Below, piece after piece: positions 20,596-64,000 of a DNA stretch of 64,000 nt (position 1 is its first letter; every line of letters begins with the position of its first letter). A model generated the notes under the pieces. The model was given only the letters and a program-made list of their open reading frames with translations. It searched no databases and was not told the origin of the DNA. The position numbers were made by a program, and so were the translations under genes. The DNA comes from Octopus sinensis (taxonomy: Eukaryota). The stretch lies in NCBI RefSeq assembly GCF_006345805.1, contig NC_043024.1, positions 7,502,001 through 7,566,000 of the forward strand, read 5' to 3'.

Positions 20596-20714
20596 GATTA
20601 TGGCCATATCACATTGAAAGCACCGGTTCTTGTCCAGTCACCAAAGTTAAGCAACGTCGAGCCTAGTTTGTACTCAGATGGGTGACCGCTTGGGAAACCT
20701 AGGTGCTGTAAGGG
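20596..20714 (+). pseudogene. 5S rRNA pseudogene / 5S-derived relic in intron 2
   Basis: About 119 nt, GATTATGGCCATATCACATTGAAAGCACCGGTTCTTGTCC...AGTTAAGCAACGTCG...GATGGGTGACCGCTTGGGAAACCTAGGTGCTGTAAG, collinear with metazoan 5S. It has box A/C-like motifs, many substitutions and no oligo-T terminator. Confidence 0.85.
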
Positions 20715-20906: not shown

Positions 20907-20956
20907 TTTGACAGATAGTACACATTTCTCACAGCTCTTGTTAAACATGGGACAAT
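20907..20956 (-). CDS. PTTG1IP: PTTG1IP-like coding exon 2 (start of PSI-like Cys-rich domain)
   Basis: Acceptor tttgtttcctttcag, 50-nt exon, donor GTAAGT. Encodes (Y)CPMFNKSCEKCVLSVK with a CxxC and an NKS sequon, resembling human CSQNTNKTCEECLKNVS. Confidence 0.9.
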
Positions 20957-33011: not shown

Positions 33012-33152
33012 TTATAACTTAGGGTATCTATGAGATACCACCATGCTCAAAATAGCAGCCATGATCTGACTCTAAAGCCACCTTAAGCGTTCATATAGCA
33101 CAAGGAGAGAAGACAAAAAACAAAACAAAACTAGTAAAAAAATTACTGGATA

Positions 33153-33211
33153 ATTCCAGATCCCGGATTTCTGACTTTGCATTTAAAAATGCTTTGCCTC
33201 ATCAGTGGAAT
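33153..33211 (-). ncRNA. Hammerhead-like motif, left arm of foldback
   Basis: ATTCCA-CTGATGA-GGC-AAA-GCATT-loop-AATGC-AAA-GTC-A-GAAA-TCCGGGA-TC-TGGAAT. Stem I 6 bp, AUC triplet, one extra A before G12. Confidence 0.55.
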
Positions 33212-33345
33212 ATACACAGAGAGAAACATAAATACAATATACGAATACTTACATATACGAACGTATACATACATACATTCGTATAAGTAAGTATTCATAT
33301 GTTGTATTTATATATATATATGTATTTATGTTTCTCTCTGTGTAT

Positions 33346-33404
33346 ATTCCACTGATGAGGCAAAGCATTTTTAAATGCAAAGTCAGAAATCCGGGATCTG
33401 TAAT
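33346..33404 (+). ncRNA. Hammerhead-like motif, right arm of foldback
   Basis: Inverted copy of 33153-33211 with one stem I mismatch (TGTAAT). Confidence 0.5.
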
Positions 33405-33547
33405 TATCTAGTAATTTTTTACTAGTTTTGTTTTGTCTTTTTGTTTTCTCTTCTTGTGCTATATAGAAGTTGGTATGTAAAAGCACGTGGCTGGATGTAT
33501 AAAAAACAAAATAGAGTGAAAAAACTACAGAAGATTTGTATTATATA

Positions 33548-39129: not shown

Positions 39130-40288
39130 GCTAATGTTTGTTTGTTTGTTGAGTGAAGCAGTCTTCGTCCCAGTGTAGTGGGAGAAGTCCGAAACGTGGT
39201 CCTTTGCTATTCGTAAGACCTGCAGAAGAGAAAGCAGGTCAACCCTCCTGACACCGAGAGCATCGACGGATGGATGAATGCGCATCCAGGCTCAGCGGTT
39301 GCGTAGGAAGTCGGGGACAAGAAACAGGAAGAAAGAGTGAAAGAAAGTTGGAGCGAAAGAGTACAACAGGGTTCGCCACCATCCCCTGCTGGAGCCTCGT
39401 GGAGCTTTAGGTGTTTTTGCTCAATAAACACACACAACGCCCGGTCTGGGAATCGAAACCGCGATCCTCCGACCACGAGTCCGCTGCCCTAACCATTGGG
39501 CCATTGCGCCTCCACTTGATGTTGGAGCGAAAGAGTACAACAGGGGTCGTCACCACCCCCTGCCGGAGCCTCGTGGAGCTTTAGGTGTTTTCGCTCAATA
39601 AACACACACAACGCCCGGTCTGGGAATCGAAACCGCAATCCTCCGACCGCGAGTCTGCTGCCCTAACCATTGGGCCATTGCACCTCCACTTGATGTTGGA
39701 GCGAAAGAGTACAACAGGGGTCGCCAACACCCCCTGCCGGAGCCTCGTGGAGCTTTAGGTGTTTTCGCTCAATAAACACACACAACACCCGGTCTGGGAA
39801 TCGAAACCGCGATCCTCCGACCGCGAGTCCGCTGTCGTAACCATTGGGCCATTGCGCCTCCACTTGATGTTGGAGCGAAAGAGTACAACAGGGGTCGTCA
39901 CCACCCCCTGCCGGAGCCTCGTGGAGCTTTAGGTGTTTTCGCTCAATAAACACACACAACACCCAGTCTGGGAATCGAAACCGTGATCCTCCGACCGCGA
40001 GTCCGCTGTCGTAACCATTGGGCCATTGCGCCTCCACTTGATGTTGGAGCGAAAGAGTACAACAGGGGTCGTCACCACCCCCTGCCGGAGCCTCGTGGAG
40101 CTTTAGGTGTTTTCGCTCAATAAACACACACAACGCCCGGTCTGGGAATCGAAACCGCGATCCTCCGACTGCGAGTCCGCTGCCCTAACCATTGGGCCAT
40201 TGCGCCTCAACACCCGGCCTGGGAATCGAAACCACGATCCTCCGACCACGAGTTCGCTGCCCTAACCATTGGGCCATTGCTCCTCCAC
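39130..40288 (-). repeat. Tandem array of 5 x 174-bp SINE B head units ending in one full tail
   Basis: GTTGGAGCGAAAGAG anchors at 39347, 39521, 39695, 39869 and 40043. The tail runs to (CAAA)n at about 39130. Confidence 0.9.
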
Positions 40289-40827
40289 TGGCTGTTGCTG
40301 CTGATGGTGGTGGTGGTCATGGTTGTGTTCTTAGTATTATCCTCACTAATATAGTAATGATGGGGGGAAAAACCCATCCAAAAAAAACACATTAATACAA
40401 TAGAGCTGAGAGAGGAGAGAACAGGATGTGGTTGTTGTTGTTGTTGTTGCTAAGATGTGACAGTGAGGTGGTGGTGGTGGTGGTGGTGGTGGTGGTGGAA
40501 TTGAAAAATTACCAAGCCAAATATAAATAGCATTACTGATAAGGTTAGTCTTGTATTAGTGGGTTTGCATATCTCACACACACACACACACACACACAAG
40601 CATGCACGTAGACAAGGATGTACATGTGCGCATGCAAACAGATGTATACAGACATGTGTATAGGATTATACGTGTAAAAGCACCAAAAGCTTTAATATAT
40701 TTTGTGTGTGGACAGCATGTGCCCAATATTTGTGCTATATTTTTATTCCTGACTTGTGGATTCTTGGACAGTTACATATGTGTGTGTGTGTGTGTATGTA
40801 TGTATGTAGTATGTATATATATATATT

Positions 40828-41060
40828 TGGGCTGGACACGTCGCCCGGCTCACCGATAATCGGTGGACGCACGCAGTTGTCGAGTGGTACCCGCGTGAGC
40901 GGAAAAGACCACCCGGAAGACCTCCACGACGGAGGAGTGATGATTTCAAGAGGACGATTGGGATCACGTGGATGAGAAAGGCGCGATCCAGAGAGGAGTG
41001 AACAGCGTGCTGTGACCAGCGGTGTCAAATGGACACCTGACGGACTGGTCGGTCAAAGTG
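40828..41060 (+). mobile_element. CpG-rich RTE LINE 3' end inserted in (TA)n
   Basis: WAGHVARLTDNRWTHAVVEWYPRERKRPPGRPPRRRSDDFKRTIGITWMRKARSREE then stop. Confidence 0.85.
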
Positions 41061-41253
41061 ATATATATATATACATATATATATACATACAACTTATAAA
41101 TGAGGGCTAAAGAAAATTATATCAATGCCAATATACTGATAACAGTCTTTTAAATCGTCAATTTCTACATATTATTTACCTGCTACAGAAAAAGACACTA
41201 AGAACTGAAATCGGAGAAGCCGGCCGAGAGAATTTTTTAAAAAAGTTCGTTAT

Positions 41254-41313
41254 TTCTATATTGAATCAATTTCGGAATTAATCTCATAAAAGATTCTTTC
41301 CTCTTCAGTAGAA
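41254..41313 (-). ncRNA. Type I hammerhead ribozyme, canonical core, sense to host pre-mRNA
   Basis: TTCTA-CTGAAGA-GGAA/AG/AATC-loop8-GATT/AA/TTCC-GAAA-TTG-ATT-CAA-TA-TAGAA. Stem I 5 bp, stem II 4+4 bp, stem III 4 bp, AUA cleavage triplet. Confidence 0.75.
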
Positions 41314-43495
41314 CATATGAAAGGATATAAATAAGATACTTACAAGCACCCATGGAAAAAAGCCGAAGCAAAAATCACGAGTACATATAAGTACCCCAGA
41401 TATATCTAAATATAAAATTCTTTGGTCAGCCTCAGCACGTGTTGACTGTTCTCCACTACAGGTTATACATATATATTTATATATACAGGCTATTGCCTGT
41501 ACAGGTGGCACGTAAAAAGCACCATCCAAATGTGGCTGATGCCAGCGCCACCTTGACTGGCTTCCGTGCCGGTGGCACGTAAAAAGCACCAACCGATCGT
41601 GGCTTCCCATGGCACCTGTGCTGGTGGCATGTAAAAAACACCCACTACACTCACGGAGTGATTGGCGTTAGGATGGGTATCCATCTGTAGAAACACTGAC
41701 AGGTCAGACTGGAGCCTGGTGCAGCCTCCTGGCTTCCCAGAGCCCGGTTGAACCGTCCAACCCATGCTAGCACGAAAACGGACGTTAAACGATGATGATG
41801 ATGATATATAATAGTTATCGCCATACTAATATGGCATTCTTATAAAAATAAGAAAAAAGCTGTCCGCTTATTAGCTCCATGAGGCCATCGCCTTAAGTTA
41901 GCTATTTGATACACAAACTGTATCCATATAACCTTCGAACAAGGGAGGTCAGTCGCTCCACACTACTTGACCGGCAGCTACAGACGCGTTTCGGAGTATT
42001 GCCCCTTTTCAATGCAGCGATGATGATATATATAAATGTATATATATATACATACCCTCTCTCTGTTTCGGAGAGGCACTGAGCGGCTATACGCGCACAT
42101 ACACACACAGCAGTAACTTCCACCTACTGAATTCCATCACAAAGCTTCGGTCGACTCGGGGCTATAGCGGAAGACACTTGCCCAAAGTGTCACGCAGTGG
42201 GACTGAACCCGAAACCATGTAGCTAGGAAGCAAGCTCCCTAACCACACAGCCATATATATATATATACATGTACATGTATATATATATGTATATATATAT
42301 ATACTCTTTTACTCTTTTACTCTTTTACTTGTTTCAGTCATTTGACTGCGGCCATGCTGGAGCACCGCCTTTAGTCGAGCAAATCGACCCCGGGACTTAT
42401 TCTTTGTAAGCCCAGTACTTATTCTATCGGTCTCTTTTGCTGAACCGCTAAGTGACGGGGACGTAAACACACCAGCATCGGTTGTCAAGCGATTTGGGGG
42501 GGACAAACACAGACACACAAACACACATATACACACATATATATATATATATATATACGACGGGCTTCTTTCAGTTTCCGTCTACCAAATCCACTCACAA
42601 GGCATTGGTCGGCCCGGGGCTGTAGCAGAAGACACTTGCCCAAGATGCCACGCAGTGAGACTGAACCCAGAACATAATAGTAGGGAATATAATTGCAAAC
42701 TTAATTTAATGTTTATTTAATTTAATTTATTGATTTTTTTAATAATATTTATTATAGTATATTAAAATTTTTCTGTATGATATAGATAAAGTCTTTGAGA
42801 TGGCTGCACCAGGCTCCAATCTGATCTGGCAGAGTTTCTACAGCTGGATGCCATTACTAATGCAAACCACTCCGAGAGTGTAGTGGGTGCTTTTACATGC
42901 CACCGGCAAGGGGGCCAATCAGGCGGTACTGGCGATGGCCATGCTCAAATGGTGTTTTTTATGAGCCACCTGCACAGTAGCCAGTCCAGCAGCACTGGCA
43001 ATGACCTCGCTCGAACGTTGAGGCAAAGAAAAAAGAAATACTTTTATACAAGTAAATCTTGTTTTTTTTTCTCATGAATAAAAACCAGCAGAGGGTGATG
43101 GGAAGGGTGGCAAACATTTTTTTACAGAAATGTTTATTTTGGAGTGGCTTAATGGTGAGGAAGAATAGATTTTGTGAGAGAATCACTTCACTAAAGTTGC
43201 AGTATAGAAAAGGAAATAGAACATCATGATTTCATAAGTTCGTGTGTGTGTGTGTGTTGTGTGTGTGTGTGTGTGTAACACTTTTACTCTTTTACTTGTT
43301 TCAGTCATTTGACTGCGGCCATGCTGGAGCACTGCTTTTAGTCAAATCAGATCGTCCCCAGGACGTAATCTTTGTAAGCCTGGTACTTATTCTACGGTCT
43401 CTTTTTTGCTGAACCGCTATGTTATGGGGATGTAAACACACCGGCATCGGCTGTCAAGCAATGTTGATGGGACAAACACAGACACACAAACATAT

Positions 43496-54300: not shown

Positions 54301-54481
54301 ATTTCGAAGGTGGCTCCGACGTTGGTTTTGGGGTCGTTACCGCTGGGGTTGTTGATTTCGTTTCTTTTGCTGTTGTTGGTGTTGTAAACAACATCAAAGA
54401 CCAACAACAAACAACAGTAATTAACAATATAAAGTCGAATCGCCATCGAGGGATCCCGTAAACTTTCTTTTTCACTTCCAT
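54301..54481 (-). CDS. PTTG1IP: PTTG1IP-like gene, coding exon 1 (signal peptide plus Thr/Pro-rich stalk)
   Basis: ATG at 54481-54479 in GTT-ATG-G context, with an in-frame TAA 9 nt upstream. Encodes MEVKKK...FILLITVVCCWSLMLFTTPTTA-KETKSTTPAVTTPKPTSEPPSK plus 1 nt. Phase-1 donor GTAGGT at 54300-54295 matches the phase of exon 2. Confidence 0.8.
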
Positions 54482-54769: not shown

Positions 54770-57190
54770 TTTCCGCCCCTTCCTCTTACCACTACTTTCT
54801 ATTTCAGTTACATCATCATTCTTTCTCTCTTTAACATTCTCCATCCCCCTCCTTCACTCCTCTGTTGTATCTACCTCCTTTCCCCTCGCTCCTCCCTCTC
54901 TGTCTTCCTCTACGCTATCTATTTTTCATATCGCTCTTTCCCTCTCTTCCTCTCTACTTTATCTTTCATATACCTCTCTCTCTGCATTCTACTTTTTCTC
55001 TCACCTCCCTCTCTCTCTGTTACATCATCATTCTTTCTCTCTTTAACATTCTCCATCCCCTCCTTCACTTCTCTGTTGTATCTACCTCCTTTTCCCTCGC
55101 TTCTCCCTCTCTGTCTTCCTCTACGCTATCTATTTTCCTTATCTCTCTTTCTCCTCTCTTCCTCTCTACTCTCTATTCTACTTTTTCTCTCACCTCCCTC
55201 TCTCTCAGTTACATCATCATTCTTTCTCTCTTTAACATTCTCCATTCCCCTCCTTCACTTCTCTGTTGTATCTACCTCCTTTTCCTCTCGCTTCTCTCTC
55301 TCTGTCTTCCTCTACTCTATCTATTTTTCATATCTCTCTTTCCCCTCTCTTCCTCTTTACTCTATCTTTCATATACCTCTCTTTCTCTATTCTACTTTTT
55401 CTCTCACCTCCCTCTCTCTCAGTTACATCATCATTCTTTCTCTCTTTAACATTCTCCATCCCCCTCCTTCACTTCTCTGTTGTATCTACCTCCTTTTCCC
55501 TCGCTTCTCCCTCTCTGTCTTCCTCTACGCTATCTATTTTCCTTATCTCTCTTTCCCCTCTCTTCCTCTCTACATTTTCTCTCACCTCCCTCTCTCTCAG
55601 TTACATCATCATTCTTTCTCTCTTTAACATTCTCCATCCCCCTCCTTCACTTCTCTGTTGTATCTACCTCCTTTTCCCTCGCTTCTCTCACTCTGTCTTT
55701 CTCTACTCTATCTATTTTTCATATCGCTCTTTCCCTCTCTTCCTCTCTACTTTATCTTTCATATACCTCTCTTTCTCTATTCTATTTTTCTCTCACCTCC
55801 CCCTCTCTCTGTTTTATCTATTCTACTCTTTCTCTCACCTCCCCTCTCTCTGTTTTATTTATTCTACTCTTTCTCTCACCTCCCTCTCTGTCTGTTTTAT
55901 CTATTCTACTTTTTCTCTCACCTCCCTCTCTCTCCTTACTCTGTTTTCATCTTCTCCTCTTCCCCCTCTCCTAACCTATATTTTCACGTTCCTGTTTTCT
56001 CAGCCCCCCGTTTCATTTTCTAGTCTATCTTTTTTCACTCTCTATTGTCTCTTTCTCTTTCTCTATTTATTTTCATCTCCCCCCATTCCTCTCTCTACTC
56101 AATACTTTCTTTCTCTGCTTTCTCACCCTCCTTTTCGCTTTCTATTCTATCTTTTTTCACTCTCTATTGTCTCTTTCCCTTTCTCTATTTGCTTTCACCT
56201 TCCCTCCCTCTGTCTACTAAATACTTTCTCTGCTTTCTCACCCTTCTTTTTCTTTGTTTTTCCTCCTCCTCCTCCTCCCCTCTCTCTCGCTATTAAATAA
56301 TTATTTCCTCTCTCGTTTTTTCCCCCTTTCCTTCACTATTTTTTCTGTCTCCCTCCTCCTCACTCTCCTCTTTCACATTTCCTTCACTATCTTTCTCTTT
56401 CTCATTACTTCCCCCTCTCTCTCAAACCATACCGTCTCTCTCACAATTCCCCGCTCCCATCTTTCCCTCCTTCATCTTCCACTCCTTTCCCATTTCCCTC
56501 CCCGACTTTCGCCTTTCCTTTCTACCTTTCACCCTCACTCTTTCTTTCCCCCTCTCTCTTCCTCTTATATTTACACCCCCTCCGTTGTACGTTCTCTTTC
56601 CCCCTCTCTCTCTATTGTTCTCTCTCCCTTACCTTCTCACCCCTCACTATAAATATACAGCTTATATTTCCTTTTCCTTTTCCTTTTCTTCACTCCTCTT
56701 ACTCCTCACTCATTCTCCCCATACACTCCCTCTTCCGCTTTTATTTACACCCCTCGGTTATACTTTCTCTTTCTCCTCTCTCTCTCTCTCTCTGCTCTTC
56801 TCTCTCACTCTTACCTTCTCACCCCTCACTATAAATACACAGCTTGTATTCCCTTTTCCTTTTCCTCACTCATTGTCCCTATACTCTCTCTCTTCCTCTT
56901 TTATCTACACCCCTCCGTTATACTTTCTCTTTGCCCCTCTCTCTCTCTCCGCTCTTCTCTCTCCCTCTTACCTTCTCACCCCTCACTATAAATACACAGC
57001 TTGTATTCCCTTTTCCTTTTCCTCACTCATTGTCCCTATACTCTCTCTCTCTCTCTCCTTTATATTTCTTCTTTTCCTAACTCTCTCTCTCTCCTTTATA
57101 TTTCTTCTTTTCCTAACTCTCTCTCTCCCTCTCTCTCTCTCTTCTTTATATTTCTTCTTTCCCTAATTTCCTTCTCCTTATCTACTTTTC
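54770..57190. repeat. 2.4-kb polypyrimidine/polypurine tract with two diverged tandem arrays
   Basis: GTTACATCATCATTC anchors near 54807, 55019, 55208, 55421 and 55600. A second array is anchored by CCCTCACTATAAATA at about 56640, 56820 and 56980. Confidence 0.9.
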
Positions 57191-57779
57191 TCGGGGCACT
57201 TTATTGTCTCGCGTAACCACAAAACCAAAGCTGCACGGTTCTACGATTCAAATGTTTCTCAGTAAACAATAGCAACAGGAAATATAAACTTGTCCTACAT
57301 CGATAATTTCATAATCAAGCCCTGAGTCAACCTTGAACGACCAGATCATCTTCCAACATTAACCGTTTTATCTCTTCTCTTTACTCTCTTTTACTCTTTT
57401 ACTTGTATCAGCCATGTGACTGCGGCCATGCTGGAGCACCGCCTTTAATCGAGCAACTCGACCCCGGGACTTATTCTTTGTAAGCCCAGTACTTATTCTA
57501 TCGGTCTCTTTTGCCGAACTGCTATGTGACGGGGACATAAACACACCAGCATCGGTTGTCAAGCAATGCTAGGGGGACAAACACAGACACACAAACATAC
57601 ACGCACACACACACACATATATACGACGGGCTTCTTTCAGTTTCCGTCTACCAAATCCACCCACAAGGCTTTGGTCGGCCCGAGGCTATAGTAGAAGACA
57701 CTTGCCCAAGGTGCCACGCAGTGGGACTGAACCCGGAACCATGTGGTTGGTAAACAAGCTACTTACCATACAGCCACTC

Positions 57780-61564: not shown

Positions 61565-61887
61565 GGATCTTTTCGTTTTGAAAGGCAGTTTTTTCTAGCA
61601 GTGTCATATGAAATTGTCACCCATAATTATGACCCTAGAATCAATCTATTGCATTTCAATCTGTTTTAGGGTTAGGGTTAGTTATGGTTAGGGTTAGGGG
61701 TGGGGGAAGGGTATCTTTTTTTCTTCACAAATGTAAATAAACCTAATCTCTTAAACGAGGGACATATTCATACGGCACAGAATGTTTCTTACCTCAATGG
61801 ACGTCAGTGATTGGTTGAAATTGCAGAAATTGAAGAAAAACAACAAATATCTTACAAACTATAGAATTTTCTCAATAAAGCCAAGAG
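61565..61887. mobile_element. Partial MITE copy, inverted orientation
   Basis: One TIR and TTAGGG repeats, interrupted by a family A SINE fragment. Confidence 0.8.
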
Positions 61888-63084: not shown

Positions 63085-63184
63085 NNNNNNNNNNNNNNNN
63101 NNNNNNNNNNNNNNNNNNNNNNNNNNNNNNNNNNNNNNNNNNNNNNNNNNNNNNNNNNNNNNNNNNNNNNNNNNNNNNNNNNNN
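63085..63184. other. Assembly gap (100 N)
   Basis: Run of N. Confidence 1.
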
Positions 63185-64000
63185 GAAAGTTGATGAGGAT
63201 GTGGAAGGCACTTTATATAAGGGTGGGTGGGCATAGCTGGGAAGAAGATAATATTGTTATGAAGGAGTGCTGGAGGAAGAGCTGAATGGGCAAGGAGAGG
63301 GGATAAGGAAAGTTGATGAGGATGTGGAAGGCACTTTATATAAGGGTGGGTGGGCATAGCTGGGAAGAAGATAATATTGTTATGAAGGAGTGCTGGAGGA
63401 AGAGCTGAATGGGCAAGGAGAGGGGATAAGAAAAGTTGATGAGGATGTGGAAGGCACTTTATATAAGGGTGGGTGGGCATAGCTGGGAAGAAGATAATAT
63501 TGTTATGAAGGAGTGCTGGAGGAAGAGCTGAATGGGCAAGGAGAGGGGATAAGGAAAGTTGATGAGGATGTGGAAGGCACTTTATATAAGGGTGGGTGGG
63601 CATAGCTGGGAAGAAGATAATATTGTTATGAAGGAGTGCTGGAGGAAGAGCTGAATGGGCAAGGAGGGTATAAGAAGTTGATGAGGATGTGGAAGGCACT
63701 TTATATAAGGTGGGTGGGCATAGCTGGGAAGAAGATAATATTGTTATGAAGGAGTGCTGGAGGAAGAGCTGAATGGGCAAGGAGAGGGGATAAGGAAAGT
63801 TGATGAGGATGTGGAAGGCACTTTATATAAGGGTGGGTGGGCATAGCTGGAAGAATATGGATATGTTATACAGGAGTCTGGGAAGCAGAGCGAATGGCAA
63901 GGAAGGGGATAAGAAAAGTGATGAGGATTGGAAGGCACTTTATATAAGGGTGGGTGGGCATAGCTGGGAAGAAGATAATATTGTTATGAAGGAGTGCTGG
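63185..64000. repeat. 123-bp tandem satellite running off the window end
   Basis: GAAAGTTGATGAGGATGTGG anchors at 63185 and 63308 and onward. Explains the repetitive ORF 62986-63780. Confidence 0.95.

Follow-up and report, generated by a model that had tools for sequence, protein, structure and literature searches.

Intron 1 of the Octopus sinensis gene PTTG1IP carries, on its sense strand, a 60-nt motif of 27% GC (41254-41313, minus strand) that is a match to the type I minimal hammerhead consensus with all core positions canonical. Positions are those of the window, by which we mean the whole 64-kb stretch of O. sinensis DNA that was analysed. Here we report that this motif is probably a fortuitous match to the minimal consensus within a young, neutrally evolving intron, yielding an RNA that is mostly in a non-catalytic fold. 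The fortuitous motif would belong to a single-copy piece of intron 1, young, AT-rich and about 380 bp long, which has retrotransposon fragments on either side and would be common to the sibling species O. sinensis and O. vulgaris only. The RNA would most likely misfold, with stem II forming and U4-G5-A6-A7 pairing with UUCA of the would-be stem III; since core bases would then be paired with the stem III region, cleavage would be absent or very slow at cellular Mg2+, and the motif would be without a role in PTTG1IP expression. We infer that the motif is inactive in vivo, and it is probably non-functional.

The PTTG1IP gene was located by tblastn with a human PTTG1IP sequence (used as a lead only), which returned collinear minus-strand exons, and the splice sites were then read in the window. 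The resulting model has 7 exons on the minus strand with consistent phases, and the spliced protein of 201 aa matches XP_036370661.1 (isoform X2 of Octopus sinensis PTTG1IP) with 100% identity from end to end. The sole difference between the two annotated PTTG1IP isoforms consists of 5 residues near the C-terminus, so that intron 1 is common to both. The coding part of exon 1 (54301-54481, minus strand, ATG at 54481) ends at the donor AAAT/GTAGGT, the AG/GTAT located 2 bases downstream not being used, and exon 2, placed by tblastn and splice sites, occupies 20907-20956 on the same strand. Between them lies intron 1 (20957-54300, minus strand), with a length of 33,344 nt. On the sense strand, the donor and the start of the motif are 12,987 nt apart, and the intron continues for 20,302 nt beyond the cut site. 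An earlier reading of the same DNA, made from the letters only and referred to here as the sequence-only reading, had placed the motif in the sense strand of a PTTG1IP intron 1 of about 33 kb, some 13 kb from exon 1, and this placement is confirmed by the spliced model with its complete protein identity. Immediately upstream of exon 1, the block at 54800-57200 is strongly strand-skewed, being CT-rich on the plus strand with a GC skew of about -0.55 to -0.58, and contains long tandem repeats with periods of ~180-400 bp.

The motif, UUCUACUGAAGAGGAAAGAAUCUUUUAUGAGAUUAAUUCCGAAAUUGAUUCAAUAUAGAA, was read directly as the minus-strand sequence of window positions 41313 to 41254, with the layout UUCUA-CUGAAGA-(stem II)-GAAA-(AUUG-AUU-CAAU)-A/UAGAA. 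Stem I is formed by the 5' strand UUCUA (41309-41313) and UAGAA (41254-41258), and stops at 5 bp, the flanking bases G/A, U/U and A/A being unpairable. The core segment C3-A9 is CUGAAGA (41302-41308), with A at position 7, and is followed by stem II (41274-41301; sequence and folding), which consists of GGAA/UUCC beginning with the G10.1-C11.1 pair, a 2x2 internal loop AG/AA, the distal helix AAUCUU/GAGAUU and the loop UUAU. G12 A13 A14 are found at 41273-41271 and A15.1 at 41270 (together GAAA, 41270-41273), the last of these closing with U16.1 the stem III hairpin AUUG-AUU-CAAU (41260-41270; predicted pair probability 1-6%). The predicted scissile bond, placed according to standard hammerhead numbering, lies 3' of A17 (41259) and 5' of U1.1 (41258), within the triplet AUA. 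All elements are on the minus strand. The minimal-consensus core is thus present in full (C3 U4 G5 A6 N7 G8 A9, G12 A13 A14, A15.1-U16.1 and H17), as are the three helices round it, with G10.1-C11.1 closing helix II. The canonical core, the 5-bp stem I, the 4-bp stem III and the cut between 41259 and 41258, all described in the sequence-only reading, stand after direct inspection and a descriptor scan. Its account of stem II as 4+4 bp is right for the basal 4 bp and needs correction for the distal part, which comprises 5 Watson-Crick pairs and one G-U rather than 4 pairs.

The descriptor scan, performed with our own program, returned the motif as the sole type I match in the 64-kb window (stems 5/4/4 bp, G10.1-C11.1). 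No type II or type III match was found in the window by the same scan. With stems relaxed to 3/2/2 bp the motif was still the sole match, and no second hammerhead-like unit was found near it. The chance expectation was assessed in two ways. Type I matches with stems of at least 5/4/4 occurred in none of 2883 dinucleotide-preserving shuffles of the window, and looser type I matches (4/3/3) occurred at 0.0097 per window. A base-frequency calculation gave ~3.5e-9 per position for type I matches with stems of at least 5/4/4, or ~4.5e-4 per 64-kb window; the rate is ~3x this value for all topologies and ~5e-5 per window when G10.1-C11.1 is required. The octopus genome has a size of ~2.7 Gb, over which a few to several tens of matches of equal quality are expected by chance, and only a few with G10.1-C11.1. 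The motif is therefore uncommon for a single window, yet expected repeatedly per octopus genome by chance. Against a chance origin stands its exactness at all 13 core positions including G10.1-C11.1, which is not trivially expected in one window. Hits of early hammerhead searches with the minimal motif were mostly likely false positives (De la Peña et al., PMC6155905).

The family models gave no support to a hammerhead. With Rfam 15 no hammerhead family (Hammerhead_1, Hammerhead_3, Hammerhead_II, HH9, HH10) reached its gathering score anywhere in the window, and searches with 1 kb and with 101 nt centred on the motif returned no hammerhead family at E<=10. The motif thus falls short of the gathering scores of RF00163, RF02275 and RF02277, the models used for natural extended type I hammerheads; it fits the abstract consensus and resembles no curated natural hammerhead lineage. 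Permissive searches round the motif gave just a sub-threshold SNORD50 match and unrelated noise. A C/D-box snoRNA encoded in the intron would be in keeping with that match, which lies on the sense strand at 41210-41295 and scored 20.3 bits (E=0.31 on 1 kb), and snoRNAs are commonly encoded in introns on the sense strand. The score is, however, under half of the gathering value of 42 and fell to 14.9 bits in the shorter search of 101 nt, the candidate C box is UAUGAGA where RUGAUGA is required, a CUGA D box is absent near the 3' end, and the stretch is conserved no further than the sibling species. A snoRNA at this position is hardly credible, and the SNORD50 identity was dropped for its sub-threshold score and non-canonical boxes.

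The sole Rfam match at gathering thresholds in the window is a full-length 5S rRNA at 20596-20714 (plus strand), with 83 bits vs a gathering score of 38. It is located inside intron 2 of PTTG1IP, in antisense orientation and at a distance of ~190 nt from exon 2, and O. vulgaris has an orthologous match of 102 bits at L003:36656-36774 (L003 being the O. vulgaris locus). Its possible identities are those of a dispersed 5S gene, of a pseudogene and of the head of a 5S-derived SINE.

The MFE structure predicted for the 60-mer is not a hammerhead and has an energy of -11.7 kcal/mol (z = -1.5 vs shuffles). In this fold stems I and II are kept, stem III is absent and U4 G5 A6 A7 are paired with UUCA of the stem III region. 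With the three hammerhead stems enforced, the energy is -8.2 kcal/mol, which is 3.5 kcal/mol above the MFE and corresponds to 0.13% of the ensemble. Stem II (pair probability >0.93) is the sole stable helix of the motif. Stem III has a pair probability of ~0.01 alone and 0.04-0.06 with 30-200 nt of flank, and that of stem I falls to 0.14-0.18 in the flanking context because the flanks compete for it. The O. vulgaris allele shows similar folding, with the hammerhead state at 0.09% of the ensemble. For a control Schistosoma type I crystallisation construct (sequence approximate), the hammerhead junction was the MFE fold and took up 80% of the ensemble. The three-way junction is hence not the predominant predicted fold of the octopus motif, tertiary contacts being ignored in this prediction. 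The sequence-only reading had held that there is no antisense arm to sequester the motif; that nothing at all sequesters it is not borne out by the predictions, since in the MFE fold the core UGAA pairs with the UUCA found in the stem III region and, in context, the flanks compete for stem I. Nearest-neighbour folding ignores tertiary contacts, folding kinetics and co-transcriptional order, so that these predictions weigh against activity and do not refute it. Natural type I hammerheads often have a weak stem III, and the weakness of stem III is consequently not disqualifying.

Compared with the minimal core-only hammerhead, the laboratory trans-cleavage form, the O. sinensis motif has the same conserved core, G10.1-C11.1, A15.1-U16.1, NUH triplet (AUA) and three helices, whereas its helices are short and AU-rich and a predicted competing helix uses core bases. 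Minimal hammerheads need ~10 mM Mg2+ for in vitro cleavage and are orders of magnitude slower than natural ones at physiological Mg2+, at which natural hammerheads are made fast by tertiary contacts of loop II with stem I (PMC3088659, PMC6155905). As stem I of the motif ends after 5 bp, the internal loop for docking loop II is missing. A pseudoknot of loop II (UAUG) with the 5' flank (CAUA), which share a 4-bp AU-rich complement, was considered and is doubtful, given that its four AU-rich pairs are at chance level (an estimated 0.25-1 expected by chance) and are weakened in O. vulgaris, where two wobble pairs result.

The orthologous loci of O. vulgaris (L003), O. bimaculoides (L002) and Argonauta hians (L001) were compared with that of O. 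sinensis. The O. vulgaris motif, at L003:13707-13765, carries 1 deletion and 1 substitution relative to the 60 nt of O. sinensis, each within the distal part of stem II, which amounts to 3.3 events per 100 nt. Over the 23 kb of intron 1 aligned between O. sinensis and O. vulgaris there are 2.9% substitutions and 1.0 indel openings per 100 nt, a total of 3.9. The divergence of the motif matches this neutral intron rate and shows no sign of constraint. The neutral probability of no change at ~39 constrained positions is about 0.22, so that the survival of the motif in O. vulgaris is uninformative either way. O. bimaculoides is without a segment matching window 40827-42797, with collinear flanks; the alignment chain jumps from 42798 to 40826 across ~96 bp in which there is a (TA)n tract but no assembly gap. 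This presence/absence may reflect a lineage-specific indel, or else a collapse of the assembly at the microsatellite. In the Argonauta hians locus, where the PTTG1IP gene is much shorter, BLAST with 600 nt round the motif and with the whole intron 1 gave repeat (SINE) matches only, and the descriptor scan found no hammerhead motif. Conservation above the neutral rate across distant species, by which the amniote RECK and CTCL hammerheads are recognised, is thus not seen for this motif. The sequence-only reading had named the orthologous intron position in other octopods as a place to check its proposal, and the outcome goes against it: the motif is found in O. vulgaris only, at the neutral rate, and is absent from O. 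bimaculoides, with none found in the Argonauta hians locus.

The motif is contained in an AT-rich stretch of ~380 bp (41100-41480) that has no further copy in the 164 kb of octopod DNA sampled, its one match being the O. vulgaris orthologue. On one side this unique stretch adjoins a probable 3' fragment of a LINE-type retrotransposon ORF (40830-41089, plus strand; six-frame translation and tandem repeat), which encodes at 40830-41060 the peptide WAGHVARLTDNRW..GRPPRR.., taken by us to resemble the C-terminal tail of an RTE-type LINE ORF, and ends in the tandem repeat (TA)n/ATATATATATAC at 41063-41089. None of the ORFs near the motif, that of the LINE-like fragment (WAGHVARL..GRPPRR..) included, had a Pfam match. 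The motif is not part of this fragment and has the opposite orientation. At its other end the unique stretch is bounded by a high-copy interspersed repeat (41480-41830, strand not assigned), SINE-like and with ~15-25 copies in the 164 kb sampled, and a further high-copy interspersed repeat is present at 42080-42680.

The motif might be a decayed relic of a hammerhead that a mobile element brought into the O. sinensis/O. vulgaris lineage, for example the pseudo-LTR of a Penelope-like element, a metazoan retrozyme, or an Sm-alpha-like SINE or satellite; the activity of this hammerhead may or may not persist. Metazoan genomic hammerheads are mostly of type I and located in retroelements (PMC6155905), Penelope-like elements are present in Octopus species (PMC8557442), and the motif is within a lineage-specific segment of ~2 kb that is (TA)n-bounded and largely made up of retroelement pieces; an exact core with G10.1-C11.1 is, moreover, ~10x rarer by chance than the stems alone. 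The resemblance to the hammerheads of Penelope-like elements and retrozymes extends to type I topology, a minimal appearance, an invertebrate genome and the proximity of (TA)n tracts and retroelement debris. Those hammerheads, however, are multi-copy, occur in pseudo-LTRs or tandem units, are usually without helix III and act as dimers (PMC6155905, PMC8557442), whereas the O. sinensis motif occurs as a single copy in the 164 kb sampled, possesses a helix III of 4 bp together with a helix II that is long and AU-rich, and shows no surrounding element structure; the lack of helix III is typical of Penelope-like element hammerheads in particular (PMC6155905). Within the 164 kb sampled no multi-copy element was found in which hammerheads are paired or in tandem, and no adjacent coding sequence of the same orientation was seen. 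No flanking direct repeats were seen round the motif, and no same-strand reverse-transcriptase or GIY-YIG remnant was detected in the six-frame translation of 40300-42300, which showed just the LINE-like fragment on the opposite strand, or by Pfam on local ORFs. The ~380-bp stretch without another copy in the 164 kb sampled and the motif without an Rfam hammerhead match argue in the same direction. An origin from a Penelope-like element or retrozyme was rejected because no second motif, repeats or same-strand coding remnants were found in the DNA sampled, and we hold a mobile-element relic of any of the kinds listed, which would have to be of low copy number, to be improbable.

There remains the proposal of the sequence-only reading, namely a self-cleaving intronic ribozyme analogous to the CPEB3 HDV-like ribozyme and the amniote intronic hammerheads. 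In this form the motif would be a genuine lineage-specific ribozyme, with co-transcriptional cleavage of the PTTG1IP pre-mRNA modulating splicing or transcript yield. Every element of the minimal consensus is present, the motif is oriented in sense and retained in O. vulgaris, and its location early in a 33-kb intron would leave 20.3 kb still to be transcribed past the cut; even slow cleavage could in principle take place during the minutes of transcribing the remaining 20 kb of intron. Intronic type I hammerheads do exist in amniotes, in RECK and C10orf118/CTCL (PMC3088659, PMC6155905). HH9 in RECK (RF02275) and HH10 in C10orf118/CTCL (RF02277) share with the octopus motif the type I topology and the location in an intron, on the sense strand of a protein-coding gene. 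They are conserved across mammals and birds, possess a pseudoknot or loop II-stem I contacts, have sequences similar to those of retroelement hammerheads and show cleavage in vitro (PMC3088659, PMC6155905), while none of these features is apparent for the O. sinensis motif and neither covariance model matches it. Deep conservation, tertiary contacts and demonstrated cleavage are what defines the amniote examples; the motif is conserved at the neutral rate only, its locus is absent in O. bimaculoides and no homology to it was found in Argonauta, its stem I has no internal loop, and its hammerhead fold takes up ~0.1% of the predicted ensemble. With the CPEB3 HDV-like ribozyme, which is of a different class and fold and is conserved across mammals, the motif has in common only the concept of a self-cleaving RNA inside an intron of a protein-coding gene, and there is no sequence or structural comparison to be drawn. 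Engineered hammerhead insertions in introns, according to what Dye et al. reportedly found in 2006, need not block splicing, as the exons are tethered to the polymerase; cleavage, even if real, would for that reason not guarantee an effect. The proposal is thus opposed by the Rfam searches, the minor share of the predicted conformer, the neutral divergence, the absence in O. bimaculoides and the failure to find a counterpart in Argonauta, and we regard a functional intronic ribozyme at this locus as highly unlikely.

The same low standing applies to a birth de novo, in which a hammerhead would have arisen from non-functional intron no more than a few million years ago, in the ancestor that O. 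sinensis and O. vulgaris share, and would cleave the PTTG1IP pre-mRNA; this, too, seems very unlikely. If true, it would be a natural example of the hammerhead fold originating independently, and cephalopods would have their first described intronic ribozyme. An active motif would extend intronic hammerheads from amniotes to cephalopods and, as a ribozyme arisen recently from neutral sequence, would bear on the idea that the hammerhead has had many origins. As a fortuitous match, which is the reading we prefer, the motif serves as a calibration case, in which an exact 13-nucleotide core and three helices on paper are insufficient. What is needed beyond the consensus is a family-model score, dominance of the fold, tertiary-contact elements, conservation and a supporting repeat context, and none of these supports function here.

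Other hammerhead-like strings and repeats were observed in the window. The string CUGANGA..GAAA occurs in excess (13 vs 4.6 expected), and a family of hammerheads was considered on this account and rejected, as coding exons, together with a palindromic element that is duplicated, account for the excess. The latter (33093-33464) consists of 144-nt arms, 90% complementary and 84 nt apart, which may be the source of the 'antisense arm' to which the sequence-only reading alluded. Each arm carries the hammerhead-core-like CUGAUGAGGCAAAGCAUUUUUAAAUGCAAAGUCAGAAA, at 33168-33205 (minus strand) and 33352-33389 (plus strand); the CUGAUGAGGCAAAGCAUUUUUAAAUGCAAAGUCAGAAA strings are not canonical, there being an extra A before G12 and no stems I or III found by the descriptor scan. 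On the PTTG1IP exon 1 side of the window, a short interstitial telomere-like (TTAGGG)n of ~5 units is present at 61666-61697, followed by a 100-N assembly gap (63085-63184) and a 123-bp tandem repeat of 6.7 copies (63185-64000), which reaches the window end. Closer to the motif, positions 39347-40208 hold 5 copies of a 174-bp tandem repeat with 96% identity. Its unit contains the tRNA-like T-arm string GGGAATCGAAACCGCGATC, which suggests that the array is a tandemly amplified tRNA-derived SINE.
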